NCBI GenBank assembly: GCA_030704615.1
Contig: CM060732.1
Coordinates: 63,054,001 to 63,118,000 of the forward strand
DNA: 64,000 bases
Direction: 5' to 3'
Source: Takakia lepidozioides
Taxonomy: Eukaryota; Plantae; Bryophyta
Shown here: piece by piece, positions 21,200 through 51,332 of the stretch
How the letters are laid out: each line of letters begins with the position of its first letter
Numbering within the stretch: the first letter of the stretch is position 1
The notes under the pieces: generated by a model
Databases searched by the model: none
Told to the model about the DNA's origin: nothing
Seen by the model: the letters and a program-made list of their open reading frames with translations, nothing else
Program-made: the position numbers and the translations under genes

Positions 21200-21202
21200 G
21201 AG

Positions 21203-27386: not shown

Positions 27387-30300
27387 TGTCGTGCACCTCA
27401 CTTTGGTAAGCTCCCCCCTCAAGTCATAGTTACTCGCTTGATGCGAGCGCCTAACTCCCAACCTGGCCGCCGGGCCAACTTGGAGCTTCGGCTGCTCACC
27501 GGGACATAACGGTCCCCCCCCCTGATCTCCCAAAGAACCCTCCAACGATTTAGAACCAGCGGAATTCCCTTTGATAGTTGGCAGTCCGGAACAGCTCCCC
27601 ACTCTTTGGTCGCTTTCCGGCTCGCTCGCTTACTCACTAGCTTTTGGTCACCAACGGGCTTGCACCGTTCTCGGGGTTACTACTCCCTATATATACTTCT
27701 GTAGCTGTCCGCGGGGGTTTCACAAACAACCATGTCATTTTATGGCGAACCACCACGAACACCCTCGACTCCCGGTGATGAGTCGCGGTGAGTCTTGGCC
27801 CACTCACCACGGCCCCTATGGACCGTGATGAGTTTAAAGACTCCCCACGACTCCCACCACGAGGTCTCCACCCCAGGATGAGTCGTATGCCACCCCCACT
27901 AAGTCCCGCTAAGCTACCACCACCCCTTATGGAGCCACCCCACCGCAACCCGGTGTGCAGGGCTTCACCTAGTGAGCGCCTCCGCCTCCTTGAGTGCTTT
28001 GGGCACTCAAGGGTGCTTCAGCCCCCCATACCTATCGCTGCCACTGCCCCCACCACAGGGGCAACCCCTCTTGTGTCCCGACCCCCTACCCTCAAGGCAA
28101 AGGGCTGCGACACACACCCCTACCAATAGGGAGTCGATGTCCTCATCGGCTTGTACATTTTGTGGAAACAAACATCCAAGTTGTGGCGTCCCACATCAAG
28201 GAGTTTGTTTCCGTACCATGGCGTCCCATGGCAAAGAACCAAACCCCACACTTGACTCTACTCTCCACTAGCTAGTTCGGCCGACTTCCTCCAAGTCCCG
28301 CCCAGGGGTGGAGCCTCTCAAGCTCCTCCCATTGCACTCTTCTTGGCCTACTTCAAGGCCAAGGAACGATCCTCCCCGAGGATCGAATCGCCTTACTACA
28401 ACAACATTGCTTGCGACCGCTCATGATGCCGCTTTTGGCATCACCTTGAGCAAGGGTTCACCTCGAACCCTCTTTGACTAGGAAGATAACCTTGAACCAA
28501 CTGCGCGCCCCAATCACTACAATTGGGTCCGCCTTGGAATGCTAGCCTGAGGTACAGGAACACGCCGAAGCCGCACTACGACTTCTTCCCGAGGCTACAC
28601 GATTATAGTACGTGAACGGAAGCACGTAGCTTCCGCGTTAGCCCGCACTACAAAGCAACCCCCTCGGTAGCACAATTATAGTATGCGTACGCGCCAGGTG
28701 CGCACTAGCACGTGAACTCCTAAAGAAGGCGTAAGTTTTCTTGCCCCTTTGGATGGAAGTCACCCGATTTCGGCACTGCGCAAACACACGAATAACCCAA
28801 TTTACCTCTCCCACTTTTGTAAGCTAGCATGCATTCTACACACTAGCCAACCACACCATGCATCACCATTCCAAACAAAATAGGACGCACAACATTTGGA
28901 ACCCATTTCCTTTATAACAAATTTTTGTACAATACAAGTTTTTGCAATCGGATTCCTAAGCTAGCTAAGCCGGGCTAAGCATGCATTTCCTCCCCCACGC
29001 TCCAAGGTTGATGTCCCCATCAACGCTTTTTCCGTTTTTGAGGTCGCCCTTCGAAAACTGCAACCGCCTCGGATGCGTTTCCCATTTCTGAGGCACGCAC
29101 CCAAGATGCTTCCACATGATGATAGCCCTTCCATTTGAGGAGATACTCCGTTTCTCGGTTCTTGAACCTCCTCGACTTAAGTACTGCCTCCACCTCATAC
29201 TCAGGTTCATTTTCATGATCCAACAGCACAGGTGGCGGACGCAACACTTGATGCCGATTCGGACGCGCTTCATCTTTGAAGTAAGGCTTCAAAAGGGAGA
29301 CGTGGAATACTGGATGCACCTTGCTGTTTGCCGGCAGCTCCAATTCATACACATCCTCATTTATAACCTTCCGGATGCGAAAGGGTCCCGCATATGGAGG
29401 TACGAACTTTGGACTCACTTCCGGAGATAGTTGAAAATTCTTGATGTTCAACCAGACCTCCGTGCCTGCCTCAAACTTCACTTCCCTCCGCTTCCGATTC
29501 GTCTGCCTTTCATACCGTTTCCTAGCTTTGGCAATGTTGTACTTTGCGAGCTTCAACAAACGCTCGCGTTCTTCCAGTACCGCCGCTACTGCTGGTTCCT
29601 CAACGTCCTGGGCGGCCCAACTTGTCGGCACCAGAGGTGCTTTTCCATAGACCAATACGAAAGGGGAAACTCCCGTTGCGGAGTGTTCTGTGTTATTATA
29701 ACAGAACTCTGCCGCGTCTAAGTGTTCCACCCAGTCTGTTTGGTCTGCCGAACGTAATTCTGCAAGATCTGCTTCACTACGGAATTCATTCTTCCGTTTG
29801 GCCGTTGGTCGTAGGTCGGAAGGCGGTGCTCATCTTCAGCCTCATCCCCATCTTCTTCCAAAGTGCCCTCCAAAATTTACTCGTAAACTTTGGATCGCGG
29901 TCCGAGACAATATCCTTCGGGACTCCATGATGCTTTAAGACGTGGGCGAAGTAAAGTCGCTCTGTTTCCTGTGCCGTTGCTGTCTCCTTGGTGGGGATGA
30001 AATGGCCCATTTTACTGAACCTATCCACCACCACCATGATTGCATCGAATCTTTTTGACAGCGGCATAGCAGTCATGAAATCCATTGAGACGTTTTCCAA
30101 AGTCCCCTCTGGAATCGGCAAGGGTTGTAACAGCCCCGCTTGCTTTTTGTACTCGCTCCGGTTTTGTTGGCATGTGGTGCATGTCTTGACATACTCCTCT
30201 GCCTCCTTTTTTCTTTCGAAGCACCGGGTGCCGCCTTGACTTGTGAAGGCCCTCCCTTCGATTTCCACGTGCCATTGTCGCCGCGTGGCCTATCCCACTT

Positions 30301-31959
30301 CTTTTCCGGTCGGAAGGAGTCACCTTCCTGCCGGGTCTTCTTGTGGTTCAGCTCCGTACGGCCTTGTCTTTCACCCTTAGGGACATCCGAGAAACATTCA
30401 GCCCTCTCAATTGCCTTGTTCAAAGTCTTAGGTGGCTTCTCCTCCAACTTCCGCCTGGCCCATTGGGCTAGTCCCGCCACAAAGTTGAAGACCATTTCTG
30501 GTTCTGCCATGTCCGCGACTTCGAGCAACAACACATTGAAAGCCTGGACATATCCCCGAATGTCATCTGTTTGCTTCAAATTCCTCATCTTGTCCCGGGC
30601 GAGCCAGGACGCGTTGAGGGGCACAAACTACCTCTTCATCAATTCCTTGAACCCACTCCAGTTCATGGTTTCCGGGCTTGGACCTCGGTCGTGAAGGCGT
30701 TTCTGCCACCATTGTTGAGCATAGCCCCTCAAATAGGTGGGAGCCATTTCCACCCGATCCTCGTCACTCAACTTGGCCGCCCGGAAGTACTGCTCCAGCT
30801 CCAAGATCCAGGTGTTGAGTGCCTTCTGATTTCGGACGCCCTCGAAGGTGCCGGGTTCCTTCGGCTTCACCTTAAACTTTGCCTTAGTGGAAGTGGTATT
30901 AGCCGCCTTCAACACGTCTTTCAACGTCCCGCCAAATTGCGCCAACAACCCTTCCCAAAAGGCTGCCGGCATGGGAGACATCTGTTGGTCGGTCGGAGCT
31001 CTCAAGGATTCCTCAGGCTCCGACTCCTCAGATTCCTCCCGCTCTTGAGCGGCCTCGTTTTCGGAAACATGCATCGCTTCTTCAAACGGCCGCCTCGGTG
31101 ACCCGTCGCCCCCATCGGGCTCACCATGATCATCATCTTTTGGGCCGTTCCGCTTTCGCTTTGGCTTGCCCGACCCCATGATGAGGCCAATCCCAAGGAC
31201 GATCGCGTACTGAACTCTAAGCTCTGATACCAAGTGTCGCGCACCTCACTTCGGTAAGCTCGCACCTGAAGTCATAGTTTCTCGCTTGATGCGCGCGCCT
31301 AACTCCCAACCTGGCCGTCGGGCCAACTTGGAGCTTCGACTGCTCACCGGGACATAACGGTCCCCCCCCTGATCTCCCAAAGAACCCTCCAACGATTTAG
31401 AACCAGCGGAATTCCCTTTGGTAGTTGGCAGTCCAGAACAGCTCCCCACTCTTTGGTCGCTTTCCGGCTCGCTCGCTTACTCACTAGCTTTTGGTCACCA
31501 ACGGGCTTGCACCGTTCTCGGGGTTACTACTCCCTATATATACTTCTGTAGCTGTCCGCGGGGGTTTAACAAATAACCATGCCATTTATGGCGAACCACC
31601 ACGAACACCCTCGACTCCCGGTGATGAGTCGCGGTGAGTCTTGGCCCACTCACCACGGCCCCTATGGATCGTGATGAGCCCCAAGACTCCCCACGACTCC
31701 CACCACGAGGTCTCCGCCCCAGGGTGAGTCCTATGCCACCCCCACTAAGTCTCGCTAAGCTACCACCACCCCTTGTGGAGCCACCCCCACCGCAACCCGG
31801 TGTGCGGGGCTCCACCTAGTGAGCGCCTCCGCCTCCTTGAGTGCTTTGGGCACTCAAGGGTGCTTCAGCACCCCATACCTATCGCTGCCACTGCCCCCAC
31901 CACAGGGGCAGCCCCTCTTGTGTCCCGACCCCCTGCCCTCAAGGCAAAGGGCCGCGACA
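27387..31959 (-). mobile_element. Chromovirus (Galadriel-like Ty3/Gypsy) LTR retrotransposon, internally deleted for PR-RT-RH
   Basis: LTRs 27387-28112 and 31235-31959 (TG...CA), TSD TGCAC, PBS TGGTATCAGAGC at 31221-31232, gag (about 30215-31179) joined directly to the integrase core, chromodomain EYEVEAVL...EYLLKWKGY...SW. Confidence 0.93.
31221..31232 (-). promoter_or_regulatory. tRNA-iMet primer binding site
   Basis: gctctgatacca on plus, 2 nt from the 5' LTR. Confidence 0.9.
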
Positions 31960-32685
31960 TGCACGATGGATGCGTGCAATACCAATGTGTGGCAGTATTT
32001 TTGCGAGCAAGGACCCGGAGGGGGCGGCGGGTTGAGCGGGAGTGGGGGTGCCTGGTGGCGACCGCAGGCCGTGGCGCAGCCACAAGGGGGGCGAGGCGGA
32101 GGGCGGGGTGGGGCCACGTAGGCAGGCCCGCTGAGGCAACAATTCAACTCCGGGCCTCATATATCACTTGCCAATATCAGTTTCAGAAATTGTGTCAAAG
32201 GAGGCTGAGATGGATCCTACATGAACCTGTAAGAGCATGACCAATAGTGGCGCGGTAAACAGACACGCCAACGGCATTATACTAGCCAATTTTTGGCCCG
32301 GAGCCCATATAGTAGTGTGGCAGCTAGCCCTGCCACCTACCGCACCACCTGTCAACACATGTGAGCGAGAATGCCCGGATAAGGCGTTGCCGTGGGGGGG
32401 TTTGGGGGACGGCAACGGAATTCTAGATGCCGTGCTTGAATGCGGATTTGTGAGCCGGCACTATAAGGAGTGGGGTGGTGCTGCTGGGGACGCGGGGAGA
32501 GCCTTGAAACCGCCGGCCACGGCAGAATGGAGTTGGCGCGTCTGAAATGGCCGCTGCTAGCCATGCTCTAACTTACATTGTACAAAGGTCCCTGGAGTTC
32601 AATGCACTGACATTGCACCAGTGATTGCCCCGCCATGGTGGCGGTTATTGTCCGTGATGGCGGACCGATCGGACTGCTGCTTGTA

Positions 32686-33549
32686 CCGTAGGTTCATAGC
32701 AGATTAGGCACAAATTAAATTTAAAAAAAAACTCCTAAGCAAATCTGTGATTTTTCAAGATTTATGCCTAAAAGGTTGGAAATATAATATGAAAGTGCCT
32801 AATTCAGTAAAACTTTGTAAGAAAATCCTACTCTATATATTGAAAATAAAAACAAATGCCTCCATAACTCTTCAAAAAGTATAGGCCAACTCCCTAGGTC
32901 CATACAACCTCCAAAGACCTTCCAATGATAAGTACTAAGTACAGAATCAAGCATTACATAAGAGGATTTCCAAGTTAGCAAGATAAGTACTAAGGTACGC
33001 AATTATTATTGTAGATTAAGGTGTGGGTATCGTGTTGTCACCGCCTTTTGTAGTTGGATTTCTCTCTCACTCTCAAATGTCACTCCTTAATTCCATCTCC
33101 TAGGCCAACCACTTGTCGGGGTCGTTCCAATGACAGAGCAAAAAATTGAAGCACAATTTGAGCCCATTACCTTATGATGTCGTGGTGAGTGTGTTTGGGG
33201 GATTTAGCCTGCGGGCTAAAAGTTGCGCCTGACCTAAGCTTGGCCCAGGCTGGGTTCCTCCAGTGTTAGCCATCTCCACATTTGCGCCCATATCGTCTAG
33301 TGGGCTCTCGGACGCCATCTCCATTAGAAAGGACTTTTTTTAGGGTTTGTCTTGGGGAAGAAGAGAGAGGGTACATGAGACCTGTGGGGATGGAGGGAGA
33401 AGTTCCAAGTGATGAAAGGTGCCTAACACCAAATATTATGGATGAAAAGTGTCTAATTTACATAAATCTTTTTTAAAGTGCCTAAAAAGAATATTCTAAA
33501 TTTAATAATTGTTAGGCACTAGGGTGCTTAATCTGCTATGAACCTACGG
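32686..33549. mobile_element. Non-autonomous Tc1/mariner-superfamily element (MITE), 864 bp
   Basis: 26-bp TIRs ccgtaggttcatagcagatta(g/a)gcac with one mismatch, TA on both sides, no transposase ORF. Confidence 0.85.
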
Positions 33550-34235
33550 TATATGCGGTATCACCCCCTCTAGGCTCTCCGTAGTACGTACGTACCTACA
33601 TATGTACAGTCTATCACCTTTTTCGCTGTAAGTAGCACGGTCGCTTTGCATTGACGCGGTCAGTCAAGTGTGTTGTGAGGCACTGCGACTGCAGGATTCC
33701 CCGGCCAGTTACTGGCGAGTGTGCATGCGGCTGACTAGGCTAGTACAGCAGATAATAAGCGGGAAGCATGTACAAGGGGCAAAGCTCGTCCACGATCGCA
33801 TTCGCTCCTTCAAGTGGCGTTGCAATGCACACTTGGGATCGTCATGTCTCATCCATTCCTTGGAAAGGACGCTGAAGACGGTGGGTGGGTGTCTGCGCTG
33901 AGGCAAACCCTGAGGTCTGAACTTGCATCTGCACTTTTTACTCCGGGCCGCTCTGAATGCAGAAAGGTGATGGTTTCTGCATTACGTGGTGGCTGATCGC
34001 CTCATCGCTTTTCAAGGGCTTCTAATTGGCTTCATGTGCAGCGAACCGTGTCTAGAGGGGGAACCTTATTAGTATACTGACGTGGGTGGGTGGCAGACTG
34101 AGTGTCGGATTCTCACCTTTGAATCAAGTTCCCGATCGCTCTGATCGTACACCAAGCACTTGCTTCTCGATACGAACGTGGGCTTGTGGGAAGCGGTCGT
34201 CGTCGTATTTGAGGGTCCCCTTTCTTCCGGTTGTA

Positions 34236-35288
34236 ATGGCTCACTATTTCGAGCTGGAGGATCTTCTTTTAGCGATGTCATCTCGCTCTCCAAGTTATTT
34301 TGTCATGGATCTGGAACGGGTTGATGTAAGCTACGATGATAAGCGGTCGCTGTACAGATTTCCTTCGCAGAAAGATGAAAGCCGCGATCACGACATTCGA
34401 TCGGCGGTTCTCCTTTCAATTACTTCCTCCGTCGTGGCGTCTGTAGACGTGCGCCTACCGGCTTACAGGAATCCACATTGCGAAGCGGAGTTGCAGGAGT
34501 TCTGCAGAGGCCTGCACTCCAAACAGACTTTACGATATCTGACGATCAAATTGGATTCGTGCTATAAGGTCGACGCAGACGGACAATTGAGTATGGTACA
34601 TCACGTCGCAGAGATGCTTCGCGTGAACAAATTTCTAGAATGTCTTGATATTTGTGGGATATCCATCCACACAGAGTCAGCCAAGCTCTTGGCTGCCGCT
34701 TTGCGTGTAAATCGTACCCTGCAAACTTTGCGTTTGAATACATGGGGCGGATCGGCAGAGGGAGTGCAAATGTTGGTGGCTCCTTTGGTGGCCACAGATC
34801 CCTTAGGCTCCAACTCTGTGCTGCAGACGTTCGGGATGGGGTGCCATTTCGGGTATAAGAGCGTCGAAGATGGCGAGGCAGCCAAGCACCTGGCAGCGAT
34901 GTTGTGTGGCAACTCTTCCTTGTTGAAGCTTGACTTTTCCAACTATTGGGATATGACGTCGGAGGGCGGTGCTGCGATCGGCAGGGCTTTGGGCGTCGAC
35001 ACCACCCTTACAAACCTGAACATGTCCGGCTGCGGGATTGGGGCGGATGGTGTGGAGGCGATAGCACAGCATCTCGCACACCACAATTCTTCTCTCACAT
35101 GGCTTAGAGTTGGTCAAACTTGGCGTAAAGAGATTGAGGGAAGCAAGGCAGCCAACGCATTGGCCAACATGTTTCGATCCAACTCCACGTTGACGCATGT
35201 GGATGTGTCACATAATCCCTTTACCGAAGAAGGTTTTGTGGAGCTCTTCAAATATCTGCCCACCAACACGTCTTTGACATACCTTTGA
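34236..35288 (+). CDS. Ribonuclease-inhibitor-type LRR region (TORNADO1/NLRC3-like repeats), first exon of a chimeric locus; probable frameshift at about 35284
   Basis: Repeats of the form L..N.(T/S)L..L.L (LRVNKFLECLDI, LRVNRTLQTLRL, LCGNSSLLKLDF, NSTLTHVDVSHN, NTSLTYL). First ATG at 34236. Removing one T continues the repeat as LTYLDLSWCKGV. Confidence 0.8.
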   Translation: MAHYFELEDLLLAMSSRSPSYFVMDLERVDVSYDDKRSLYRFPSQKDESRDHDIRSAVLLSITSSVVASVDVRLPAYRNPHCEAELQEFCRGLHSKQTLRYLTIKLDSCYKVDADGQLSMVHHVAEMLRVNKFLECLDICGISIHTESAKLLAAALRVNRTLQTLRLNTWGGSAEGVQMLVAPLVATDPLGSNSVLQTFGMGCHFGYKSVEDGEAAKHLAAMLCGNSSLLKLDFSNYWDMTSEGGAAIGRALGVDTTLTNLNMSGCGIGADGVEAIAQHLAHHNSSLTWLRVGQTWRKEIEGSKAANALANMFRSNSTLTHVDVSHNPFTEEGFVELFKYLPTNTSLTYL

Positions 35289-35960
35289 TCTTTCTTGGTG
35301 CAAGGGTGTCGCCGGGGACTGGGCGTTGGCAGAAATCGCTGTTTCTAATAGTAGTGAACGTAGAGCACACAAGTTTATCCCGTTGCGCAGGGTTGTATAG
35401 AGGACCGAGGTGGGAGCGGCGCATGGCGTTACAAGGAATGATGAGGGCCGTGAGTCCGGAGGCAGCCCGCGTGTTGACTTACGGCGTCGCTGGTACTCAA
35501 CCACACTTTCTCTTTCTCATACTACACTCATCCTGTTTTGCTTTTCCATGTATTGAGGACGCCGAACGTAATGTAACAAGTAACTCCGCGGAATAATGCT
35601 AAAGTCTTGACCTCCAACGCGGAATGCAATGTCAAAGTGAGACTGAAAAACTCCGCGGATGTTTGGTTCCATACAGTTGGCCAACTAGAATCCATTTCAG
35701 GTGTGGTTTCCGTTGTCTTCTACTCAAGGATTCTTGGACAGAATTGTTGAGTGGATTTTGCTAATTCTCACTATTTCCTTTCAACATCTAGGTGGATAAG
35801 ATCGAGGACTAGGAGCTAGGCTCCGAAATCTGCCTTCGCATTCCAAATGCAACACAAGATAAAGAACTCCAGCGAAAGTGAGAATCTCTTTTGACTGCCT
35901 AATCTTCTTGTTCAATGAATAGGCTAGCAAAGCATAGTATTCAAGTGAGAAGCAATGTAA

Positions 35961-36246
35961 TTTTTGCTGCAACCTCCTGCCAAAGTCGTCCACAGCTTGG
36001 AGGTTGGAATATCTAACATCTGCACTATGAGATACGAGTAGAACACGCACTGTTCCTTCCAGGTCCTCTGGCAGCCACTTCACTGGCCAGGAGAGTTCAT
36101 GATTGTCACGATGAACCCATGTGTGCTTTGAAACGCTGCTTTCCTCTCCAAACTGGAGTCCATGGAAAAAGATGACATCCAGGGTGGTTTCCCGATCATC
36201 GTTAGGGGGTGGCCACACTTGTTGAACGAGGTAAACCTCGGCAAAA
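35961..36246 (-). pseudogene. N-terminal exon of a SERAC1-like alpha/beta-hydrolase domain, inverted relative to the rest of the gene
   Basis: VWPPP...LDVIFFHGLQ...TW...WPVKWLPEDL...RVLLVS is the conserved start of this hydrolase family. Confidence 0.8.
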
Positions 36247-37369
36247 TGAAAGAGATCTACAGTCAGAAGTGTTGTATAGTTTCCAAAACATTGATTCAAA
36301 GCTTTAAGAGTACTCTTTTAATTGCCAAAAGAAAAAATCTAGTGAGCTTGCAATGTGTCTTTGTCAACATGTGTCCACAATATTGTTTGAAGCAATGCAT
36401 ACATATGTTACCGTATCCAGAGTCTAAAACCATGTTGCAAAAAACAATGAGTTGTTTCAGAACAGAACTAGAGATGTGGTAAGCACAGTTGCAGAGATAT
36501 GATGAGCTCGCTTGTGAGTCTACAGTGAAAAGAAATATCTTTTCATGAAAGCTACTTAATGATGTATGATGTACTTTATTAACATCGGAACGTACAGGAG
36601 TCACTCCACGATCTTTGGCAGTGAAAGGTGCTCATAACATATTTGAATAACTAGAACCCTCTGACCCATCAGTTAGAGATGCCGGACAAGTAGGGGTACC
36701 TCATGACAAAAGAAAGGAACTTTGCGACAAGGACCTCTTCCAGACACACTCACTTGCACCTACGACCTAGCCTAACATACACCGATCGTAGACAATACCA
36801 TTTTGTACCCCCAAGGAGTGACGAAGAGACCTCATACCACATGTTTTTGGTCCCTGTTGCTGCTTTCGACCTTTTCTCAACCATAGTCATTAACCCCTGC
36901 ACGGATACACACCTCTTGTTACTCTCAACCGGAGAAGCTGTTGGTACCTTGCAAGAGTTGGTGAAAAGTCGAGATCCTAGGATTTCACATGAGAAAGTGA
37001 CCTTTGCGGTGATGGGTGGTGTGATTCTCTGTGATCTCTCGTTCTACAACACTCTTGGTTGATTATAGTTGACTGCTAAATGCAAAAAGTGCGGATTAGT
37101 TCTGTATTCTGAATAACGCACCCTCAATCTACCCTCAACTTTTGAAGGTAGTCATGCACAAAACTCATTTTTGAGGACAGGCACTCCCACACCGGTTGCA
37201 TTGCACTCAAATACCAAGTCTTAGGTTACAGGTGGAGAGATGAACTGTCTGATGGAATATTCTTATCATTTTCAGAACAAGATCTGGAAATGTCTATGCA
37301 CATTTTGGTGTCCAAGATCAAAATCTGATATTAGTTGATCCTGTTCGCTTGCGGTTCATTTGCTTCCAG

Positions 37370-38282
37370 GTTTGGATGGCAAAAACCAATAGTGCTTGTT
37401 GGCCATGGCTACGGAGGTTTGGCTGTCAAGAGCTTAGTGGTAACATACTGCAAGGACTGAAACCATGCCATGTGCGTACGAACTGGACAAGGAGGCTGCT
37501 GAGAATGCAAAAGCGTTCTTATCAAATCTCCGAGGCGTTGCATACTATGCTGTTCCCCATTCCGAAATGAACTTGGGAAGTTTCGGTGAATTGGAGCCCT
37601 CAAAAAATAATCAACCCGACCTGATTGAGCATTTATCGACAGAATTTGAGGGAGTTATTCGTAGACTTCAAATCCATGTCTTTGCTTTTGGAGAGGGCAA
37701 ACCAACACAAAAATGGGTATGTTCTCTGGAGTTTTTCATAATGACGAACCAAGAAATGTTGTGCTGCATAGTGTTGGTATTAATAAAACTTACTAAATGG
37801 ATAGGAACATGATGCAAAGGATTTAATGTTGGGTGTCAAGTAGTCCAGTATTTTAGGGTTAGCTAGGTGTACGTTCTCCTTCAACAATAACTAAGATTGG
37901 CGAGTTTTCCCCCTCTGAGAGGTTGAATTGCTTACTTTCCATCACATGTGGAGAACACAGACCTATGGTAATCCTCCCTGTACAAGCAACGATGCTGTGC
38001 AGACGAATCAGAAGCTGAATTGTGTCATCTATGGTCCAAGTGGTTTAGATATCTTGAAGGCTGCCTTTTCTGCGACAACTCTTTGAGGTTCAAGAAAGTG
38101 TTACTACCTCCAGTGGTTGAAAAGATGAATGTTCTATCTATGAGTCTGCCATAAGATTATCTGGCTATAACAACTACAGAGTGGAGGACTCGGATCATCT
38201 GGATATCACACGACCTCCTTCCAGAGAACATATCATATGTGACAAATTGTTGATGCTGCTGAAGATTTGCCAAAAACCAGTG
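37370..38282 (+). pseudogene. Remaining alpha/beta-hydrolase exons (37370-37716 and about 38121-38282)
   Basis: KPIVLVGHGYGGLAVKSLV, FLSNLRGVAYYAVPH, FAFGEGKPT, NNYRVEDSDHLDITRPPS. One frameshift near 37450 and an in-frame TGA at 38118-38120. Confidence 0.8.
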
Positions 38283-38630
38283 GTACGTCCTCATGTCAGT
38301 AGTGGATTTTTTATCTCCTTGCCATATTTGTCCCTCACTTATTTTATCATTAATGTGCGCCTGTACTCCGCCGATGTAATCTGGGTTTTGCAGTATAATG
38401 ATGACTAATGCGTAACACCTTCGCCTCAGCTCTAGGTTAGCAATATTTCCTTATGCTATCCTGCTGCAATCAATCTTGCAATCGGACCCTGAGACATGTG
38501 TCCTACACTTTCTCTTGTCAGCTGTAGATATGTGTAGACATGTGTAGACATGGTGTCTTGTAGATTGCGTTCTTAGCATATTTGCATATTGTGCCTTTGT
38601 TATTATTTTTATCTGGTCACTTGAGTGCAG

Positions 38631-40484
38631 GTGAACTTTGATCTTATGATCTCTCAACTTGAAGGAGGGTGCCCAGAGGAGTACAACACCATAACTGACC
38701 TGTTCCTCGAGGTATGAGTCAATGGATGACTACCATAAGTGTATTCAATTCACTAATCTTCACCTGAACCTGAAGCTTAACAGAGGAACCTATTAATCAT
38801 GAGTTTGTGTTGTGCAGCGCAACATGATCAGGGAGGCAATTGCTTTTCTTCTGGATGTTTTGAAGCCTAACCTTCTAGAGCATGCCATGCTTCAGACTAA
38901 GGTAGAGTCAGCTCTGACTCTCACAATGTCCAGTGCAGATGGACTTGCATGGTCTGTGTCTTCCTGTAACTTGTCTGTTGTTTACTAGTCCCCTCCACTT
39001 TACATAGCTACCTTGCACATACTTACCTGTAGACATGATCGACAAGGTCATGTCAATCCACTGGATAAGGTTTTTCCCTGTTAGTGCGGTTGACATGTGT
39101 AAATGAATGTTGTTGGTTATGCAGGTCTTGAAGATCAGTCTGGTCAACATAGCTGATTCAATTTTGGCAAATGCCATGTCCAGCCATCATGACTGTCCTC
39201 AAATTGCTGAGCTATGTTGGAAAGCTGGTCTTTACACATGCCCTTCAGGTCTATTTCTGCTTTTGCACTCTTGCAGTTCTCTGCTCATTGTACTTCAATC
39301 TGGTAATTTTGCTGGTGTGTCTTGACTCAGGTCCAGAATATACTTTCCATTAGGCCTGAGTGCACCTGCTCTTGAAGGAACAAGAAATATCCTGAATACA
39401 CTGACTGAAAGTGGAGCAGTGAATATTTTTTCCCCTCTTTTGTGTTCTAGCTTGGTCTCCAGATTAATTTTTGCAGTGTATCTGGATGTATACATCATAC
39501 TTGCCCTGGAGGTCAAACAGGCATTTTATGTCCATGCAAATAAAGTTTCTAATGATCCTTCCTTGTGCAGTTGAACCCAGAATATGCTCCTCTGGTGGTT
39601 GGGCGATTGCTGGATGATGGCCACCCTGAGGATTTCATCAAGGACCTTATCTTGTCTGTCTGCTCTTTACTGCCAGTGGAGGCACTGGTTGACGAGTGTG
39701 AGAAGAGGTCATAAATTGTCCCAGGGTGTCTTTATGTCATTATTAATCTGTTTGTTTGCTCCTAGCATGATGTCTATGTCACAGTCAACTCTCAGGTCAT
39801 GCGCAAGATGAAAATGTATGGAAAGAGGGCACATTACTGACCTGTTAAATGCATGTGGAAGCTGTTTGTTGTCTCAGGATTAACGGTTTGATGGCTCGGA
39901 CAGGAACCGGTTGAGATTGCTGACACAGGTCCTAGAGCATCTTGTGAGTGAAGGGAGCGAAGATGTGCATGCACATAATGCATTGGGGAAGATCATTGTC
40001 GATACAAACAAGGATCCAGAGTTCTTTCTGACCAGAAACTGCTACTATGACTCTAAGGTCATTGGTAAATATTGTGGGACAAAGGATTACACACTTGAAG
40101 TAATTGCATATAGACGTGGTCAATGTGATGCTGAGCTTGTTGATGTCACAAACAAGCACAAGCTCTTCAAGATTCAGGCCAGGTACATCCCAACTCTATC
40201 TCCTGTCATTTGTGATTTTGTCTTGTGTTATTTGCATGGTCTTAGAAATGATAAAGAAATTACCTGACTACATCTTGGTGGCGCTTCTTAGGTATGTGGT
40301 GGAGCGCATGGATCCTGACTTGTGGAAAAAGGTTCTGAACCCAGAGTATGCAGAATACAGGAAGCAGTTTACTCTTGAGGTGTTGTCTATTCTTCTACCA
40401 GAGAGCAAGAACCGAGAGCAGGTGTTAGCCCTGTTAGCCACTTTGAAGGCACACTTGCCCCATGAGTTAGTTGAGCTTTTATAG
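38631..40484 (+). pseudogene. Diverged clathrin heavy chain fragment, six exons (38631-38711, 38818-38901, 39125-39248, 39571-39707, 39904-40182, 40292-40484)
   Basis: [27 protein letters not shown] / [18 protein letters not shown] / [23 protein letters not shown] / [30 protein letters not shown] / YVVERMD...LPHELVELL* match plant clathrin heavy chain repeats; all introns are GT-AG. Confidence 0.9.
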
Positions 40485-40547
40485 TCAAGCATGTTCTTCA
40501 AAACTCTGCCTTGAGTGGGTAGTCACGTCTAAAATGATCTCTTTGCA

Positions 40548-41520
40548 CGCTGGTGGCATTCAACGACCATGGGGAGGAAGGTGGGGATCTCAAATGGAAA
40601 CGGGGGCGAAGAGGGCCCAGTGCTCCCTTCCTACACTGTCCCTCCCTTCTGAAGTCAAAAGGACCATGCTTCGCAATGTGATAAGGCCTGCTTTGGAGTG
40701 TGCATAAGCCGTGTGAGTTGACAACTCCAACCATGCCAAGTCCCTTGAATGCATCCAGGCTGGGGTGCTCTAAGAGTGTATGCTAGTGTGCTCCAGAACA
40801 GCTATGTGGCTGTTCAGGTGTAGTTTGGCATACCTTCTTTGAGCTCTCCAGGGGGTGAGTTCAAGGTCAGATGGTGGGTTCAGTCGAACAAAATGCCTAA
40901 CACCAGACACCCTAAGATAATCAACTCTATTCTCACTGATAAACAGTCGAAGTCCTGGCGGAAACAGGTAGAAGAGATTTTTAAGGATCTGGATATCAGC
41001 ACTCTAGACTTTTCTGCTAGATGACGGTGAGTTGGCAACTATTAGTATCCAAAGACTTGTAGGTTTCCCAAAGACTGTCCGATGAGAAAGAAGTTAGGGG
41101 TAAGACATCCCCGAACTTGTTTCCAGTCTGGGACATGGGTAATGATGTCCTTAAGGATGACCTGAAGGGCTTTCCTACTCTATGCATTAGACTGAAATCT
41201 AAATTAAGGACATGTGAACAGCAAACAGATGCAGTAACCTGAAGACAATATCCACTTCCTCATTCGTTGTCCACAGTACTCTAGCCAGAAAGGGACCCTT
41301 TTCGATTACATCAAAAACATGGAACTGGTATTTCTGTTCAACCACTTATAAAATCTTGAGGCTGAGCCTAAAGCCTTGGCCCTGTTGGGTGCTACTTTCT
41401 GGGCTACCCACACAGACAACTAGATGATATCTGTAAAACCTGGACTAACTCCTTATACGTTTATACCAGAGTGAGCTTTCACAAAGGTAGTTTCTGTTCC
41501 CTTTAGTTCTGCCAACCGGC
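40548..41520 (+). mobile_element. Old, degenerate copy of the RTE-X-like LINE 3' half
   Basis: Collinear with 1101-2270 (ggtggcattcaacga, RPALE, ttcaaggtcagatggtgggt, gaggctgagcc). Confidence 0.85.
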
Positions 41521-42849
41521 TTTGGTATTTCAACCTGATCCCAGATGTCTTCATTCTCCGAATCGAGGATACAAGTAATGTGGGAATCTTGGGGTCCAAG
41601 GGTGCCCTCTCAATGGAATCAGCTTTTTGAGGTTAATGGGCTCTCAAGTCAGCTTTCTAGACTCTTGCTGGCAGTAAAAATGAATGGCCTTGCAGAGCCT
41701 TGTACATCTGGTGTTTACACTATCTATGTTCGGGAGATATATGAAAGGATTGCACTAAAGCAGGTCATGCTGTAGGTTCCAGCCCCCTTTTGTTGTTGTG
41801 GGAGCCATTCATTCTACAGCTCATAAGATACTTTCGCACCGGCTGTTATTTGAGCCAAATATATTTGACCTTGCTACGGTGCCATTCGGATGGGGGAATA
41901 GATTTATCCTGAAATTTTGACATGGCAGTGGCGGGCAGTGGTAAAAACTGGGGCCAGCATTATCCCGGCTATTAAGAAAGTATTCGTTCCCATGCATGTC
42001 CCCACGAACTGTGTTCCCAATAATGTGGCCCTGATTATGCGCTGGATGTGGAGGAGGAGGGGAACGTATGGAGTTAGAGTTTTTGAATGCAGCGCTAACC
42101 GGCCTCTGGTTATTGGTATACTAGGCCCTCCCCACCCAAACCATGATCTAAGCCTTCCCCTATAAAAAATAGTGCAGCTGAATAGATTTACACATTGTAG
42201 ACGCACCCCTAAAGGACGAGAGCTTTTTTGCATTTTTTTAGAAAAACCCGACATGGCCTGACTCGGATGGATGTATGTTGCTGCCAAAGTTCATCCATGT
42301 GGATGAACCATACAATGTTGTAACTACATCATATAGGTGGTCAACAAATTTGAGGTCATTCCACAGTTGGACTGAGCAGATTATAATGTGAGAGTGACTC
42401 CCAATTTGTAGGCTCATACAAAAACTCATGGAAAAACTTGGTTTGACCACCAAGTTCTTCCATGTTCCAGTTTTGGTTCCCCTCCAATTTTTGACCAATT
42501 ATTGCCTTCCAAGTGGAGGACATTGTGTCCAAATTTTAGCATGTGATGACATGTTTTCATTAGTGCCCCTTTGTATGTAACTGTTTAGGGGTTCGTGTTG
42601 GCAAAAAATACAAGGTTTTTCTTTGGATGCAACTAACAGCCAAAATTTTGCATGAAATTGAAAATTTCAACCCCCTTTCTCAGAACCCTAAGCGATCATT
42701 GATCCACATCACCAAGTCAAGACTCTAACATCACACAAAATCTGCACTTTTATAAGACAGCTGTTTGTCCAGGAGACAGACAAACAGCTTACACAAGATG
42801 GTTTAATCCCCCTTGGGGCCTTGGGTGGAAGAAGAACTAATTATGTACA

Positions 42850-43848
42850 ATGCCACAATATCCGGAACAATCTGGTGATGGTGTTGGAATCAAGCTTCAT
42901 GCTAACTGTGGTGCATACATCAGACCTGCATTTGCTGTAACCGGATTGTTCTTGGGTGTACAGGAGTAAGCCATGGCGATTCCAGGTAGACTTTCACATG
43001 TTTTGTGGACCAAAAATGCCACAACTATCTAGGAGGGTTATCCAATGGGGAGTATGTCCCCAAAAGATACATTATAGCCAACATTTGAATGGACACACCG
43101 AGGCATCCTCTGCAGATCATCCCCGTTGGGTCACTAGACCACCTTCAGACTGGCGATTCACCTAGCCCTTGGCCTTCTCTCGCTGATCATGACGATGACA
43201 TAAACTGGCGCCACCGCAAGAGCAGGGACTCCAAAGCAAGGCCCACCTGAACTTTGAACCTCTTCGTCGCAAGCGCTAGAAGAGGCTCCCTTCACATTTG
43301 GGTCTTCTAGTGTTAACTTAGTATTCACAAAAGATCGCTTGCTTACCTTTTTCCATTGAATCAGCTTGTGATCTTCCTCGTCTGATTCAACGATAGCAGA
43401 ATCCTTTGTTTGGCCAATCAGCCTTTCTGGCCTGCTACCTTTAGTCCTCTGGAAATCACATTCTGCATATGTTTTCTCTTAAGTAGGATTCAGGCTTGCT
43501 GTCCCAAAAACAGTGAATCCCTCTGAGATTTAAAGCCTCCCCCTAGGAGGACAGGTCTGGGTGTTACCCGATCATTCGTTGATGTACTCGCCTTCTGGTT
43601 ATTTTTTTTCCATGTCTCTCTAATATGAACTACAGGGCCTCCGTCCCCTTTTATTAATAAATAAAGAAAACATTTGAAAACAGCAGTCAATGAGTACATT
43701 CTCTTTCCAACACCAGAAAGGTGTAAAACTTGGCTGACTCTGTAAATTCACTGGACGTTAAAGAAACTTTTTTTATCTGTGACACTAGCTTCACCATGTG
43801 TTCTCTTTATACCTCTTTCATCATTCAACTTGTCAAAGCTAATTCCTT
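42850..43848 (-). pseudogene. Inverted relic of the SDR exon end and following intron, with two later insertions
   Basis: Reverse complement matches about 3216-3570 of the SDR gene. Confidence 0.85.
43090..43668 (+). mobile_element. 579-bp insertion with A-rich 3' end and 10-bp TSD, probably a truncated non-LTR retroelement
   Basis: aacatttgaa at 43080-43089 and 43669-43678; the empty site is visible in the paralogous SDR intron at 3350-3359. Confidence 0.75.
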
Positions 43849-43955
43849 TCAATTTGAAACCCTTAATGTGGGGACATACTTTTGCATTAAAGACACAGCA
43901 TTAAGAACCACAATCACATGCAGTAATCCGTGTAGAATCGTTCTCATTGTCATCC

Positions 43956-46900
43956 TTATGCATTTGGATTGGTTGGCGATTCTTGGTCCTTCATGTAAGG
44001 TATGACACTGGAAAAAGACGAAAGTCGGACAGGGAGCCCATAATTTTGAAAAGTTGTAATTTCTCCCCCTAAACTAGCTGTAACTATGACCATGCCCCAC
44101 CCTGCAGACACCACAGGGTTATTCCCATGGCTACTCCTCTCGGCGTCCATGTGGTCACTCCCACTACTCTTTGGGGGCGCACCTTGAGGCAATCCAGACC
44201 CTGATGTGGACTGACTGCAAAAGGAAGGGAGCTTTTCTTCTGGTGAGGTGGCAGACTCTTTAGACCCATCCTTGGGTAGGAAGCTGGAGTGGCACTCTGG
44301 GTGGGGCAGGCGATCATTGCAGGTGCTCAAAGCAGGTGGACTAAGAAAGGGCTCTCCCCTTGCATCCGTTGGTGACGCTTTGGGCCTCCCACTCCGAGAT
44401 TCACCTTGCCCACTCTCTCCCTGCTTTACTGAGGTGACTCCATCCCTGTCACCCCTTTCTAGCTTCTTGCCTAATCCACACCGGCATGGAGATAGTCCAA
44501 AACATGATGTCGCTCTGGACCGAGACTGATATGTCTTGGAAGTAGATTCCGAAACTGGACTGGCAGCACGGTCTGCGTGGCTGTGGCCTTTCGAAGGCTC
44601 AACTGAGGCCCTTCCACTCCCTCCATGCCCTGACTCTGAGAAAGCATCAGTATTCTGGTTTGTTTCGCTTTGCCCTCTTGATGGCGAATGCACTCTATCA
44701 CTATAAACCCTAAACTCTGACCTGCCTGGAGTTTCCCTGACCAGCACTGAGGGTCTTGGCTGAGAGGCAACTCCAGGCCAGGTAATAGCCACTGAAACTT
44801 GTCGCGAGTAGAAATCTTCACATGATTGTTGCTTCTCTCTGTTATGCGCAGACTTTGTGGATGGAGCACTCGCGCTCCCATTCCTCCAGACACACACCCG
44901 TGAGTCTTCACTGGCACTGACAATGAAGTCTCCACTTGGGCTGAATGACGCCGAGCTATGGCTGTTAACATTTCGCAGACCTGCCATATAGTGTATATGT
45001 AAGCAAAGCAAGCCAGTAAAACAGGAGGGGTGAAGAGAAAGAAAGAAGTTGCTAGGTCCACCGGAGGTCAAGGGCCTAAATGACAGAGAAGAGAAACAGA
45101 ACCAAAGAGCTACAGAAGCAAGGATAGAGAGAGAAGAGAATGTAAGAAAGATAGTAAGGAACTTGAGATCGTCCATTGGGAGCTCAAAGAGCTCACTGAA
45201 CAAGGAACAGGAAGAGAACAGAATTTTGAAAGGCCGCTGGAATCTGAAAGATTCATGGGAGAGAGACATAGATGTAATCATAAAATGTACTTGATTCCCA
45301 TGAGAAGAGACGCCTGGGGCTTGTAACCATACACATCCTTATTTGGATGCCCGTTGTAATGCATGGGAATTGCCACAGCCTTCCATAACAAACAGCATGC
45401 CACCAATTACAAGATAATATTCCAGTATAGGCCGATCTGGAAGTGCTATCTGTGCGAATTGAAGATGATATATGCAGGCGATGATAAAGTAAAGATTTGC
45501 TACTGCAGGGTAGATTGTAAAGCATGCCAATGCAGAGAGTACTTTGTCACCAATGTTTGCATGCAATAGCCAGACCTTGCACCCAATTTGTCCAAAGGGA
45601 AGAAGAAAGAAAGAGACAAAAACGAACAAGAATTGTGGAAATAATTAACACCTTTGTACTTCGCAAATAAATTTAGTCCATCATATATCCGAACGCAAGA
45701 ATCATTTGATGTTACCAACACTTTACGGGCGTCACCTGGCATACACTGTCCACCACCAGACCATCAGTTGAGCTTGTTGATCCTCCTTTAACTAGCACAT
45801 AGCTTAACCATATATTTTGTCACTTCACAAACCAGTGAACCCTCCTGAGAGACTTCAGAGGCGGTAATCTCGACCATGGAAACCACCATAATTAAAGTCT
45901 TCTTCCCCCAGTATAGTGAACTATGTGGCTACTAGTCAACACTAGTAGTCCACACATACTTCTCACCATGACAGATCAAGACGTTTTGAGAAAATGGGTC
46001 AAGGAACTTGAGAGGTTGGTATAGTGGGTGTACATGAAGGCCAGTAATTTTCTTGCTGCAAGCCTTCTTGTTTCGATCACTCCGCACATGGATGTGTGCT
46101 TCCAGCTGCAGCCTGTTCCCTGTGGACAGGGATTCTGCACCATGTGACAGGATACATGGCTACAGAGCTACCTTCATGCAGTCATAAGAAGGTTAGATGG
46201 TAGATAACATCCAGGTTCGGGCACATGGCCATCTTACAAGTGGTCGTGGGTTCAAAGCCACATAGGTGTATGGATGTCACCCATTATAGCCGACCCAGCT
46301 ATAAAAGGGGGGTCCAGGGTCAACCGGTCACTTAATGTGTGGGTACCTAAGGGCTTTTGAGTCCTTGGGGGAGGTTTGGGCAACCGCGCTGCGCGGTTAT
46401 GGCTGTTAGAAGGTGTCCACCTTTCAAACGGAAGGCAGTAGCCCTTCGGGGTGAAGTGACACCATAAGTTACACCTGCTTCAGCAGGAGTCTTCCTCCTC
46501 TCTCGTAGATGGTGAACTTTTCCCCACTGACTGTCACCCTACGCTATTCATAAAACGAGGTCCCCGAGTCATGTGAAAGTCTCACAGAGCTATGACAGAT
46601 GAATGCACCATTTGCAAGATAATCTGGCATCCATTTGCAAGTGGTCCAATTCAAAGACAGCAGCAGGAGTGTATTTTTGCACCCATGTTCACCACAGAAA
46701 AAGGGGAATATAAGCTCATTCTCCTGAATAAAAGGAGATCAAAAGTGCAGTTTAAAATGTGGGTGATGTCTAAAGACAGTGTTCCCAACCTCCAATGTTG
46801 TAGAAACGGCAGATGCCCTTGTATGATCCCACCATCGCCCTCTGCTCAGCCAGCCCTAACAGCACACATGCCAATTAGAGTGAGTTTCTCACCAAGCGAA

Positions 46901-49900
46901 CAAATAAGTCTCAATCCCTCAATAGTGAAGAGGAAACCATTCAATTGACTAACTTCTACATCCAATGAACAGTTTGGTTTATCATCGCATCAGGATTCCC
47001 TTCCCTTCATACTGTAGAGCATTCAACATCTTAGGCCTCACTCGTAGTGAGAAACAAGAGAGTGAGAGGAGCGAAAGAGAAGTACCAAGACAGATAGACA
47101 GTTGGCTAGAGAAAAAGGCAAGCATGACACCTTGCCATCGGGAGTGTAGCATACAGCTGTTACCATCTCTCGCAAATCCCTCCAGTCCACAACTTGGTGG
47201 TCTGCAATGCTCCATAGCCGCACTTTGTCATCAAGTGCCCCACTCAGAAAATAGCGATTGTCGATTGGATTGAACGCTATGCTTGTCACTACTCCCAATT
47301 TCAACAGCCACAAGAATTGCACTAGATTTTTAGCCATGTCTTCAGGGAAACTACTAGACACACAAACCTCTCAGTTTTGATATTTTGATGCTTGAGATGG
47401 CTTGACTAATAACAGCTAAGATCCATTTGTGATGGAGGCACGTGGATGATGCTTAGGAGGGGGCTTTATTGCATTCGAGTACCTCCGCCTCAAGGCCATT
47501 CAGGAAAGCATTGGATAGGAGATGACATGGTTGTTCATTCTACTCGACATGTGGCGGTCTGATATAACCTCCCATATAAAAATAAGTCCGTTCCAGAACA
47601 TGTCTGTCGGAATTGACAATGTGGGTAGTATAAAAAGATTGCAATGTAAGATGCTGAAATAAGAGTTTCTGTGATGTAAGAAGCACTGGATTTCACAAAA
47701 AAGTTGTTACAGCCACTCTGAGCACGTGCCACAGCATGACATGGTTCTCTATTTCCAAAACACAGGTTCTTCCCACACACCGTGTAGTTTTAACTCAAAA
47801 TTCACTGTCAAGTGCAATGAAGACCTCTGGAGCTCACCGTAGTCATTATGCGAGAAAGTTCGCAAGCACTCCTCATACGAGATGTGCCACAAGCGCACAG
47901 TTTTGTCCATGGACGATGACAGTAGAAACTGCTCTCACATCCCCAATTATCACACATTAGCAGCTGGCTAGGGCATGCCAGACACAAATCAAGCCATGAT
48001 GATAACCGACATTACTGAAAGTTTGGCACAAAATAGCCCCAAGGAAAGGAGAAATGGCATTGTGTATGATGACAGTATTTTCAGTCGTATAGCTACCCTC
48101 TACTGCCGTCCACTAAATGCTGTGTGAGGTTTTCATTCAAGAGAAACAGGACTGTTGTCCAATCATGCAAAGAATGTCATAAGCTTTTGAGTAAGCTATA
48201 TGGCATTCCATCTTAAAGTTGCTACCTAGAGGGGAAAGTATTCACCTCCAGGATTGTAGCTACAAGACAAGGACATCTGTGGTGAAAGCACAGTCTTGTA
48301 GCTTCAGAGTACTATCTCCCCTCCATGCTTTTGCAGAAGAAAGGAGGCACAACCCTGAAGTTAAAACATGTCTCCCTTGCACGTTCTTTTCTTTCTTCAG
48401 TCCATTACCTGACTTTGAGACCATGATAAGTCCAACACATCTTCAGTATGGCCACAAAATGAGCACATTGCTTTTTCAGAGATCCAAAAAAGCTTGGGAA
48501 CTGGGGCCTCATTCTCCAGATTTTCTGACTGCCTTTTACGAAAGGAATGAATTCTGCGTCTCAACACGCTGCGCAATCCTGTCTCTGAGCTCCCCTTCTC
48601 TTGTGCAACCCTGCGGTCTCCAACACAGTTATCTGCATTCAGCACGCAATAATTGTGGTTTCCCAGTGAGAGGCATGGAAAATGTCTCAGTTGCACTCTT
48701 TCGTATTGTTCACCAACTTTGAAAATCTTGAGGCTGAGCCGAAAGCCCTGGCCCTGTTGGGGTCTAATTGCTGTGCAGCTCACACTCAGCAAGTTGATGC
48801 TTGTGTGAAGGGCTTATATATGGAAAACCCGAACTAATTGTCTTTATCATGGTAAATCACACTACTGGAGTGAGCCCTCGCAAAGGTAGTATCTGTTCCC
48901 TTTTGTTCCACCCAAACTGGGCACAGAGTCTATGGCCACAAGGCTACTGCAAGAGTCTTCTGAATACATTCTTTGGTATTCTTCCAGGATACACAACTGT
49001 CTATGCCTTTTTATGAAACTGAGGAACCCAAATGTCCATACCTCACTCAGTCACATCACCATCAATTCAGGCTCAATCTCTGATGGGTACAAATCTCACA
49101 ACCAGCTTTGAGAAGGTTGATGAGGTTTAGCCACATAGACTCAAAGGTACATCATTGCCCATTAGCAGACTTTACAAAGGACTCTTAATTAACTCCATGC
49201 TAGGTACTGCCCGTTTATGACAAACCACTGATTAAAATTATCGTGTCCCTGCTACACCTACCTGGATCGGTCCTCGACGGGTGATCAAGAACCTCCCAGA
49301 TATGCACCTTGCGGTCTTCACCGGCACTAGCGAGGTAGAGTCCATCAGGGCTGAATTTCATGGTCCAAATTGCACCCTGGTGAGCCTTGATTTCTTGTCC
49401 CATGTGGAGATCTGACAGCTCCTTGTAGCTCCTGTGGTGCACCCGCACTTTGATTCGCTGGGGCTGCTTCCGTGTAGGTATTGTATCAGAGTTTTCCTCA
49501 GTCACAGACCCCAAGCGCCAGACTCCCTTCAACGAGTCCTCTCTATCACGGCCTCGCATGAATGGACCTCTCAACCGGAGTCCCTTGGGTGAGCCCCATT
49601 TTGAAATGCCTCTCTTCAATGACCCCTCTACACCATCATCAGCATTTTGAGAGCCTTTATTACTGGGTGACTTTTCTCCAATTTCTGGTATGGTCCTGGA
49701 GTTGATATTGATAAGCAAACTGTCCTTCTTCAGGACGCCAGAACCAGCATTCAACTGGGGCCTATTGTCAGCGTGCCCACCTGCCTCTTCCTCTCGTGTC
49801 CTTACTTCTTTTTCAAGGTTTGGAAGTGTGAGCACCTTACCTGAGTCAGCGGCCCTACCTTCATCCCATGTGCTATCAATGCCCATCTTATTCACATCAA

Positions 49901-51332
49901 CCTCCTTCCCACTGCCCAAGTCCCTTATTGCATTTCCAGCCTCCTCAATTTTCTCATGTAGCAGCGAGCTGCCATCTTGGTTTGTTGACTCAACCGCTTG
50001 ATCCCTGTTGTTGGCCTGTAAAATCTCGAGAACCTCACCACCACCTGCCTCCCCACAATGGTCTTCTGCTAAATCTGGAGGTAAGTCAGGTGAATTAGAG
50101 CACAGGGGAGCCAGATTACTCCTGCCCTCCGTCACAAGTGCACCATTCGTATCCACAGGTCTTTCTATCCCAAATATTCCTACCTGAGTACCTGTTCCAG
50201 ACCTGCTAGGCCCTTCGGTATAATTGACTATATTCTCAGAGTAGATTCCCACCATCGCCACTGCAGCGTCCACCCTAGGTTGCACCTCGGGAGCACCCAA
50301 AGTCAGTAAGCAATCATGTCCGGCACTCCCTCGCTCACCATCAGAAATCTGACATACTAGATTCTCCTGCACATGTTATCGTTGTCTCTCTGTTTAATTA
50401 TTTAGAAACATTCACTTTCTTGAAATTCACTCGACTCACTGCTAGTGCAGGGAAACCTAATGCAGAACTGGCTCCGACACTGAGAACGCTCTCATGTGTG
50501 ATCACAAGGGGCCCCTCTATAACATCTTCTGGTGGCCACTTGTGATGACAACCACAGGGGGCACTTCAGTCGCTGACCAAGTTGACGGAAAATTCACCAA
50601 AAACTTTTCCAAGTTACATAAGGATTTAGTATAAGCTATCTGCGCTTTCCTCTTCATGTCACACCCTGAGAAGCAGCTTTGTCGGCATTCGTCCTCACCT
50701 CCCACTTTGGCAAGAAACACTAGACTCGGAAGTTAAATACATGACTTGCACCACAGCGCCTCCCAGCGACGTAAGCCCAGGTCCCTCAGACAATAATTTC
50801 TCGAATTTTGTGCGTCACTGCAACTATTCCTGCATGCACGGATTTCTGAGGCCAGAGCACAAACTATAAACACCAGGTGACCTCCGGGCAAGACATGATA
50901 TTTCATCGCGTAACTTCCATGAGATCCGAAAAAGTGATCATGGGGGGATCTTGAGCTTACGCTTTCCTGGATGTCATTCATTCCAGCTGCATGAGTTCCC
51001 GTGCAAATCGTCTTTTTCTTGCCGCCGTGGGAAGACAAAGGTTTGACGAGGAGCTCAAACATATGCCCAGACATATGTTCTTCTCTAAGGTTTCTGATTC
51101 CCATTTTCTGGAAAAAGCGTTGCCGCCGCTCATTGATGCTTCCAGGGTCATCGATCCACACTGAAAATTTGGAACCGAGGAAATGTAAGGGAAGATTTCG
51201 GTCATAGATGGCTGCTGCGTTTGTTGGGCTGCTGGGAACACCCAGGTGTTGGTTAGTCTCGTCATCTGCGCTTGATATTGATGATCTGTCGTCCAAGGCG
51301 TTGAGTTTGTCATCTGAGACTCCCCCGTCCAT
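43956..51332 (-). CDS. WD40-repeat protein, WDR44-like plant family. Confident exons: 50366-49262, about 48553-48410, 47928-47838, 47288-47131, 46841-46790, 46119-46034, 45745-45652, 44980-43956; first exon starts at 51332, 5' structure uncertain
   Basis: [112 protein letters not shown]. Splice phases are consistent from 48410 to the stop. Confidence 0.88.
46210..46475 (+). mobile_element. Possible tRNA-derived SINE (second family) in a WD40 intron
   Basis: B-box-like gggttcaaagcc; the tail agtagccc...gacaccataa.ttacac recurs near 63822-63860. Confidence 0.4.
48620..48980 (+). mobile_element. 3' end fragment of the RTE-X-like LINE in a WD40 intron
   Basis: caccaactttgaaa...gaggctgagcc...gttgatgcttgtgtgaaggg...tggccacaaggctac matches about 2050-2325. 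Confidence 0.85.

Follow-up and report, generated by a model that had tools for sequence, protein, structure and literature searches.

We analyzed a 64-kb stretch of transposable element (TE)-rich, plant-like DNA from Takakia lepidozioides, hereafter called the window, focusing on a locus where sequences for leucine-rich repeats (LRRs), an α/β-hydrolase, and clathrin heavy chain (CHC) lie next to one another. An original prediction made from the DNA sequence had read these parts as a single gene encoding a non-canonical immune receptor with an integrated decoy. Our results suggest that the locus is likely a pseudogenized member of a lineage-specific mosaic gene family with multiple copies, which combines the hydrolase exons of a Hyd-NLR, that is, a nucleotide-binding LRR receptor (NLR) with an N-terminal hydrolase (Hyd), with internal CHC exons. 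The hydrolase, LRR, and CHC parts were searched exon by exon, and no second copy of any of them was found within the window.

Hydrolase exons and their relatives

The hydrolase sequence of the window is divided into H1 to H4. H1 (35964–36239, minus strand) encodes the motif DVIFFHGL...WP.KWLP.DL. H2 (37360–37442, plus strand) carries the nucleophile elbow GHGYGG, in which the nucleophilic Ser is replaced by Gly, and an extra base at 37442 shifts its frame relative to H3 (37443–37716, plus strand; YYAVPHSE ... FAFGEGKPT), which ends in the donor TGG/gtatgt. H4 (38124–38282, plus strand; YESA...EDSDHLDITRPP) retains the catalytic His, in the motif EDSDH, and ends in a phase-0 donor at 38282 (CCA GTG/gtacgt).

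A phmmer search with H1 against 1.84 billion representatives returned 101 matches, the long ones combining the hydrolase with NB-ARC and, in part, LRR domains (P0072, P0021, P0017, and P0016). The best match (P0011, 55% identity) was located on contig L001, where the gene is laid out as exons H1, H2H3, and H4 followed by an NB-ARC–LRR exon. When window H1, H2, H3, and H4 were compared with the L001 exons using BLASTP, they showed 54% (to exon 1), 54%, 40%, and 50% identity, respectively (E-values of 4e-27, 2e-8, 8e-18, and 1e-15), with identical breaks. Hydrolases of this class were described in bryophytes as part of the HNL (Hyd-NLR) receptors, in which a conserved phase-0 intron separates the hydrolase from the NBS domain (Xue et al. 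2012, PMC3352924); the phase-0 donor at 38282 of the window corresponds to this intron. In addition, Hyd domains from Marchantia trigger cell death in N. benthamiana (Chia et al. 2024, PMC11218826). The phmmer search, the exon comparison, the related loci described below, and these two studies all agree with the earlier assignment of the hydrolase to an NLR-associated type. The window hydrolase represents the complete α/β-hydrolase domain of an HNL receptor, encoded by three ancestral exons.

Because of the Gly at the Ser position, the window sequence lacks the G-x-S-x-G nucleophile motif of active PGAP1/DUF676/SERAC1-like serine hydrolases, and Pfam PGAP1 gave only 0.19 on a short hydrolase piece. 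The corresponding position in the relatives reads GHSxGG (P0021, P0072, and P0013), GHCFGG (P0017), or GHNIGG (L001). Since bona fide Hyd-NB-ARC genes (L001 at 9272–9754, P0017, and P0016) also have another residue in place of the nucleophilic Ser, its loss alone does not mark a pseudogene. Other arrangements were seen among the matches: P0047 (1065 amino acids) has a protein kinase followed by the same hydrolase type, and P0013 (653 amino acids) is a tandem double hydrolase without NB-ARC.

We compiled 85 related hydrolase loci from other organisms (0.7 Mb in total), 80 of them on metagenome contigs that apparently represent plant host DNA. An NB-ARC segment was found 60–550 nucleotides (nt) past H4 on the same strand in 29 of the 32 loci with enough downstream sequence, and none of the 85 had CHC-like or ribonuclease-inhibitor (RI)-type LRR sequence. 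Two loci of another organism (L003 at 2217–3384 and L004 at 2747–3914) contain H1 and H2H3 with no detectable H4 or NB-ARC and then run into a retrotransposon; they are another truncated Hyd locus. The predicted lack of an NB-ARC domain in the gene was borne out for the entire window: tblastn with five NB-ARC/NACHT proteins and the L001 NB-ARC–LRR exon found no NB-ARC in the 64 kb, the matches being confined to hydrolase and LRR_6 sequences.

Clathrin heavy chain exons

Six CHC exons, here called a to f, lie downstream of H4 on the plus strand. Exons c (39125–39248), d (39571–39707), e (39904–40182), and f (40292–40484) correspond to residues 594–623, 807–851, 856–941, and 946–1008 of bovine CHC, respectively; exon e lies within CHCR3 and matches Pfam Clathrin with 5.8e-15, and exon f ends in a TAG at 40482. 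Exon a (38631–38711; 27 codons, phase 0 to phase 0) and exon b (38818–38901; 28 codons, weak Pfam Clathrin match) were placed by eye in the stretch of plant CHC just upstream of exon c. Compared with solved structures (PDB), they showed no CHC match, being too short to score; in RNA contigs, they are spliced to exon c. Of the six CHC exons originally proposed, c to f were identified by bovine mapping, with Pfam support for e, and a and b by eye and by RNA continuity.

The fragment amounts to ~300 of ~1700 CHC residues and belongs to the distal leg (roughly bovine 527–623 and 807–1008). From exon c to exon d, it skips ~183 residues (624–806), and the propeller, light-chain-binding, and trimerization regions are all absent. 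No further CHC coding sequence was found in the 348 nt upstream of exon a or in the 322 nt that separate exon c from exon d. The former interval, which separates the H4 donor from exon a, has stops in every frame and contains no CHC N-terminal domain, as had been predicted. A metagenome scan with exon e gave no match. By eye, the fragment is ~75% identical to plant CHC, reflecting a much faster rate than that of canonical CHC.

CHC-like sequence continues by eye past exon f to ~40515 and is then cut off by a dispersed LINE-like repeat fragment (40551–41414, plus strand) that is 67–77% identical to copies at 148–2130. The LINE-like repeat copies have a C-terminal Cys/His motif and no Pfam match. 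Sister mRNA contigs, described next, extend beyond 40540, the end of the contig-mapped stretch, towards this repeat.

Transcribed sister copies

We placed read contigs (short Logan contigs) from four runs on positions 34550–40540, two of them DNA runs (X1 and X2) and two transcript-like (X5 and X6). The RNA label of X5 and X6 is a guess; their RNA nature is argued from exon-only coverage and GT..AG joints, both seen in these two runs only. The X5/X6 contigs were mostly 90–97% identical to the window, indicating that they come from sister copies rather than from the window copy. In the DNA runs, contigs with 90–99% identity covered nearly the whole 6 kb, and the word depth of the variant contigs was 149–399×, 3–8 times that of the zero-difference contigs (45–63×), which points to several genomic copies.

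The RNA contigs joined H4 to the CHC exons in frame. One joint (38279>38631), with 9 extra nt in the sister mRNA, connects H4 to exon a and reads K P P S D V N F, and another (38279>38817), with 2 nt in between, connects H4 directly to exon b; because exon a is 81 nt long, this second in-frame joint follows automatically. Further joints link exon a to exon b (38709>38816) and span the four CHC introns. The in-frame splicing of hydrolase to clathrin sequence that had been predicted from the phase-0 donor at 38282 and the phase-0 acceptor gtgcag/GTG AAC at 38631, both of which are present as described, was therefore observed in the sister copies. Upstream, a joint with 14 nt in between (37717>38139) reads GWIVP together with the G at 37717 and restores the expected hydrolase strand. 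Base 37442 was absent from the contigs of all four runs, so that H2 and H3 form one open reading frame (ORF), and a single exon, in the sister copies, and sister exon c carries two more bases than that of the window (loose ends at 39236 and 39568).

Together, the RNA joints at the predicted sites indicate that the hydrolase and CHC parts belong to a transcribed multi-copy family rather than being unrelated relics, and transcription was seen in two independent studies. The transcribed copies have defects of their own. In the sister mRNA, the 30 nt preceding H1, which belong to an exon not present in the window, include two stop codons when read in the frame of the hydrolase. H1 of a more diverged transcribed variant is interrupted by an in-frame TGA. 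A variant found in both X5 and X6 departs from the window at 37409, right after GHG, for at least 135 nt. This divergent stretch, which opens with CATGGC repeated and a TAA, resembles an insertion accompanied by a short duplication.

Lesions of the window copy

The original prediction had placed all parts on one strand. H1 instead lies on the minus strand, within a 1.5-kb segment (35590–37089). Opposite-strand joints in DNA (35589<->37089, X1) and RNA (36149<->37364, X5) indicate that this segment is inverted in the window relative to the sister copies, and zero-difference DNA contigs span both breakpoints, showing that the inversion is real in this genome. In addition, the first 15 nt of H4, which encode GWIVP in the sister mRNA, are scrambled and leave no AG acceptor, and H1 has no Met. 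The lesions of the window copy comprise the inversion, three frameshifts (the +1 in the LRR ORF described below, the +1 at 37442, and the 2-nt deletion in exon c relative to the sister mRNA), the lost acceptor, the premature TAG at 40482, and the Ser-to-Gly replacement. RNA matching the window copy itself was limited to low-depth, unspliced, near-identical sequence at 35165–36043. The window copy cannot make the chimeric protein; it is a dead copy, and the suspicion that it carries several lesions and is a pseudogene of a larger family, which the DNA and RNA contigs revealed, was correct.

The upstream LRR open reading frame

Upstream of the hydrolase–CHC unit and in the same orientation is an LRR ORF of 400 codons (34086–35288, plus strand; first ATG at 34236), which matches Pfam LRR_6 with 5.2e-9 (35.9 bits versus a gathering cut-off of 23.4). 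It consists of about nine RI-type repeats of 28–29 residues each, and the chance of a stop-free run of this length is ~5e-9. Its stop is created by the +1 frameshift near 35283, one further repeat following in the next frame to ~35400. The nearest database relatives, of which one carries a NACHT domain, were generic LRR_6 proteins with 27–29% identity, and the atlas neighbors of the ORF were LRR_6 clusters. In a set of 5.8 billion proteins that does not include those of the source organism, no close homologs of the LRR ORF, H1, or H4 were found, the searches returning distant LRR_6 proteins or nothing.

The LRR had been proposed to share a transcript with the hydrolase. However, RNA depth over the LRR ORF was ~0, no contig of X5 or X6 connects it to the hydrolase, and the exon upstream of H1 in the sister mRNA is neither present in the window nor in frame. 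The proposal is not supported.

Other features of the window

The window also contains chromovirus-type gypsy elements, LINE-like repeats, a PPR E/E+ fragment, and a WD40 gene. The LRR region is immediately preceded by a small long terminal repeat (LTR) retrotransposon (27387–31964) with LTRs of ~730 nt that are 93–98% identical (27387–28117 and 31235–31964) and a minus-strand integrase with SH3 and chromodomain. Two long intact ORFs without a Pfam match (958 and 391 amino acids) occupy 18323–22378, downstream of a shattered gypsy gag-pol, and PPR fragments with E and E+ motifs in several frames at 8165–9260 are probably a frameshifted PPR pseudogene. The WD40 gene lies on the minus strand (43956–51332), part of it flanked by a short direct repeat pair (41335–41509 and 48707–48908) that is 82–85% identical and 7.4 kb apart. 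A tandem array of CACAGC-rich, 19–20-nt units is located at 22512–22750. An Rfam scan of 31000–44000 gave no match.

Origin of the chimera and alternative explanations

Since NB-ARC follows H4 in the related loci, the phase-0 donor is shared, and the 64 kb contain no NB-ARC, we conclude that the CHC exons replaced the NB-ARC–LRR part, apparently in this lineage only. The family began at an HNL gene and retained its hydrolase exons (H1, H2H3, and H4). Six CHC exons with their introns now follow at the conserved phase-0 intron, in the place of the usual NB-ARC exon, and the LINE-like repeat cuts off the CHC fragment. As the CHC introns are retained, we infer that the chimera arose by exon shuffling at the DNA level and then spread by duplication.

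We examined the constraint acting on the family using the listed exonic differences. Sixteen of 38 were synonymous versus 11.4 expected under neutrality with the observed spectrum (P = 0.08), giving an omega-like ratio of ~0.6, and divergence among the copies was ~3.5–7.5% in exons versus 6.4% in introns. This non-significant synonymous excess, the similar divergence of exons and introns, and the stops in transcribed variants favor a transcribed, weakly constrained chimeric family. On balance, we consider that the family is under weak or no constraint and that a transcribed pseudogene or young-gene family is a better description than an established immune sensor.

Several points weigh against this interpretation of the locus. 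The substitution sample comprises 38 of ~240 differences and mixes several paralogs. The key joints rest on short Logan contigs with 29–32 nt on the shorter side, and no full-length transcript was seen. The RNA status of X5 and X6 was labeled by guess, although coverage and joints argue for it. Finally, the sister copies are known from contigs alone, and the proteome of the organism is absent from the protein databases searched.

Among the alternatives, the one that survives best, although we regard it as rather improbable, is that LRR, RRM, hydrolase, and CHC fragments were captured serially by a Helitron-, Pack-MULE-, or CACTA-like element or carried along with one, amplified into dispersed chimeric pseudogenes, and transcribed by read-through. 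The unit is multi-copy and dispersed in a TE-rich region, its copies are 90–99% identical in introns and spacers as in exons, constraint is weak, and all fragments share one orientation apart from the inverted H1 of the window. However, neither terminal repeats nor other element ends were detected flanking the unit in the window, and no repeat pair brackets 32000–41500. Moreover, the three ancestral hydrolase exons have been kept and the CHC sequence joins exactly at the ancestral NB-ARC intron, which is more readily explained by rearrangement within a resident Hyd-NLR gene than by random capture.

It is unlikely that intact sisters form a functional receptor family, an NB-ARC-less sensor-effector with the hydrolase as executioner, the CHC distal leg as bait for binding by pathogen effectors, and N-terminal LRR/RRM modules, of which the window copy would be a recently dead member. 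In-frame splicing of hydrolase to CHC in two variants, transcription in two independent studies, the cell death elicited by Marchantia Hyd domains, and the mild synonymous excess are consistent with such a function. Nevertheless, this excess is not significant, and exons have diverged about as much as introns. Upstream of H1, stops interrupt the hydrolase frame of the sister mRNA, window H1 lacks a Met, and in-frame stops occur in at least two transcribed variants (the TGA in H1 or the TAA after GHG). The nucleophilic Ser has been replaced, the CHC piece shows an arbitrary internal deletion of 183 residues and terminates where a repeat was inserted, and a phase match is expected by chance in one of three cases. 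The reading of the locus as a sensor with an integrated decoy is accordingly not supported and stays speculative. We are equally doubtful that intact sisters constitute a new NB-ARC-less immune module in which the HNL-type hydrolase is combined with a CHC bait for effectors hijacking clathrin-mediated endocytosis, or with a coat tether. That such a module would carry interchangeable N-terminal LRR or RRM parts, as an "integrated decoy without an NLR," appears similarly improbable.

The remaining view, a chance juxtaposition of three unrelated relics that share neither a transcript nor a history, fits the missing RNA link between LRR and hydrolase and the broken window copy with H1 on the other strand, but it is hardly credible, being contradicted for the hydrolase and CHC by the RNA contigs that join them at predicted splice sites, by sister DNA contigs covering the whole 6 kb, and by CHC exons occupying the place that NB-ARC has in 29 of 32 relatives, so that it could stand for the LRR only.

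Significance and comparison with known systems

In the preferred reading, a mosaic family derived from a Hyd-NLR gene, the locus documents exon shuffling at a domain-boundary intron of a bryophyte-type immune receptor, in which the NB-ARC–LRR part was swapped for a piece of an endocytic coat protein and the product was amplified and transcribed. If a member were translated and under selection, this would be a new architecture in plant immunity and a gene recently born from an NLR. Otherwise, it clearly exemplifies how NLR loci in TE-rich genomes make transcribed chimeric pseudogenes, which annotation can mistake for novel receptors. For the window copy itself, the answer is the ordinary one given above.

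The HNL receptors of bryophytes are similar to the window locus in their homologous N-terminal hydrolase (40–54% exon identity), three-exon structure, and phase-0 intron after the hydrolase. In contrast to them, the window lacks both NB-ARC and a plant-type LRR, its hydrolase is followed by CHC exons, and the nucleophile is Gly. Truncated NLR-derived genes (TIR-only/TX, CC-X, and RPW8-only) likewise have an N-terminal executioner-type domain without NB-ARC–LRR, sometimes fused to other sequences; here, the domain is of the hydrolase type, its partner is a fragment of a cytoskeletal or coat protein, and the coding integrity of the family is unproven.

NLRs with integrated decoys (NLR-ID) resemble the locus in that an unrelated host-protein fragment is fused to an NLR-derived module. 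However, the window lacks the NB-ARC core, the defining switch, and the single LRR it contains is of the RI type and lies upstream, with no RNA connecting it; a role of the CHC piece as an effector target is speculative here. In a full-text literature search, we found no paper on a CHC fragment joined to this type of hydrolase or incorporated into an NLR. Canonical CHC shares the CHCR α-solenoid repeats (Pfam Clathrin) and spliced exons with the fragment, which differs in its short length, its internal deletion, and the loss of the propeller, light-chain, and trimerization regions. Finally, Helitron and Pack-MULE chimeric transcribed pseudogenes are comparable in being multi-copy mosaics with retained introns, chimeric transcripts, and weak constraint; here, no element termini were identified, and the join uses the ancestral intron of a resident gene.

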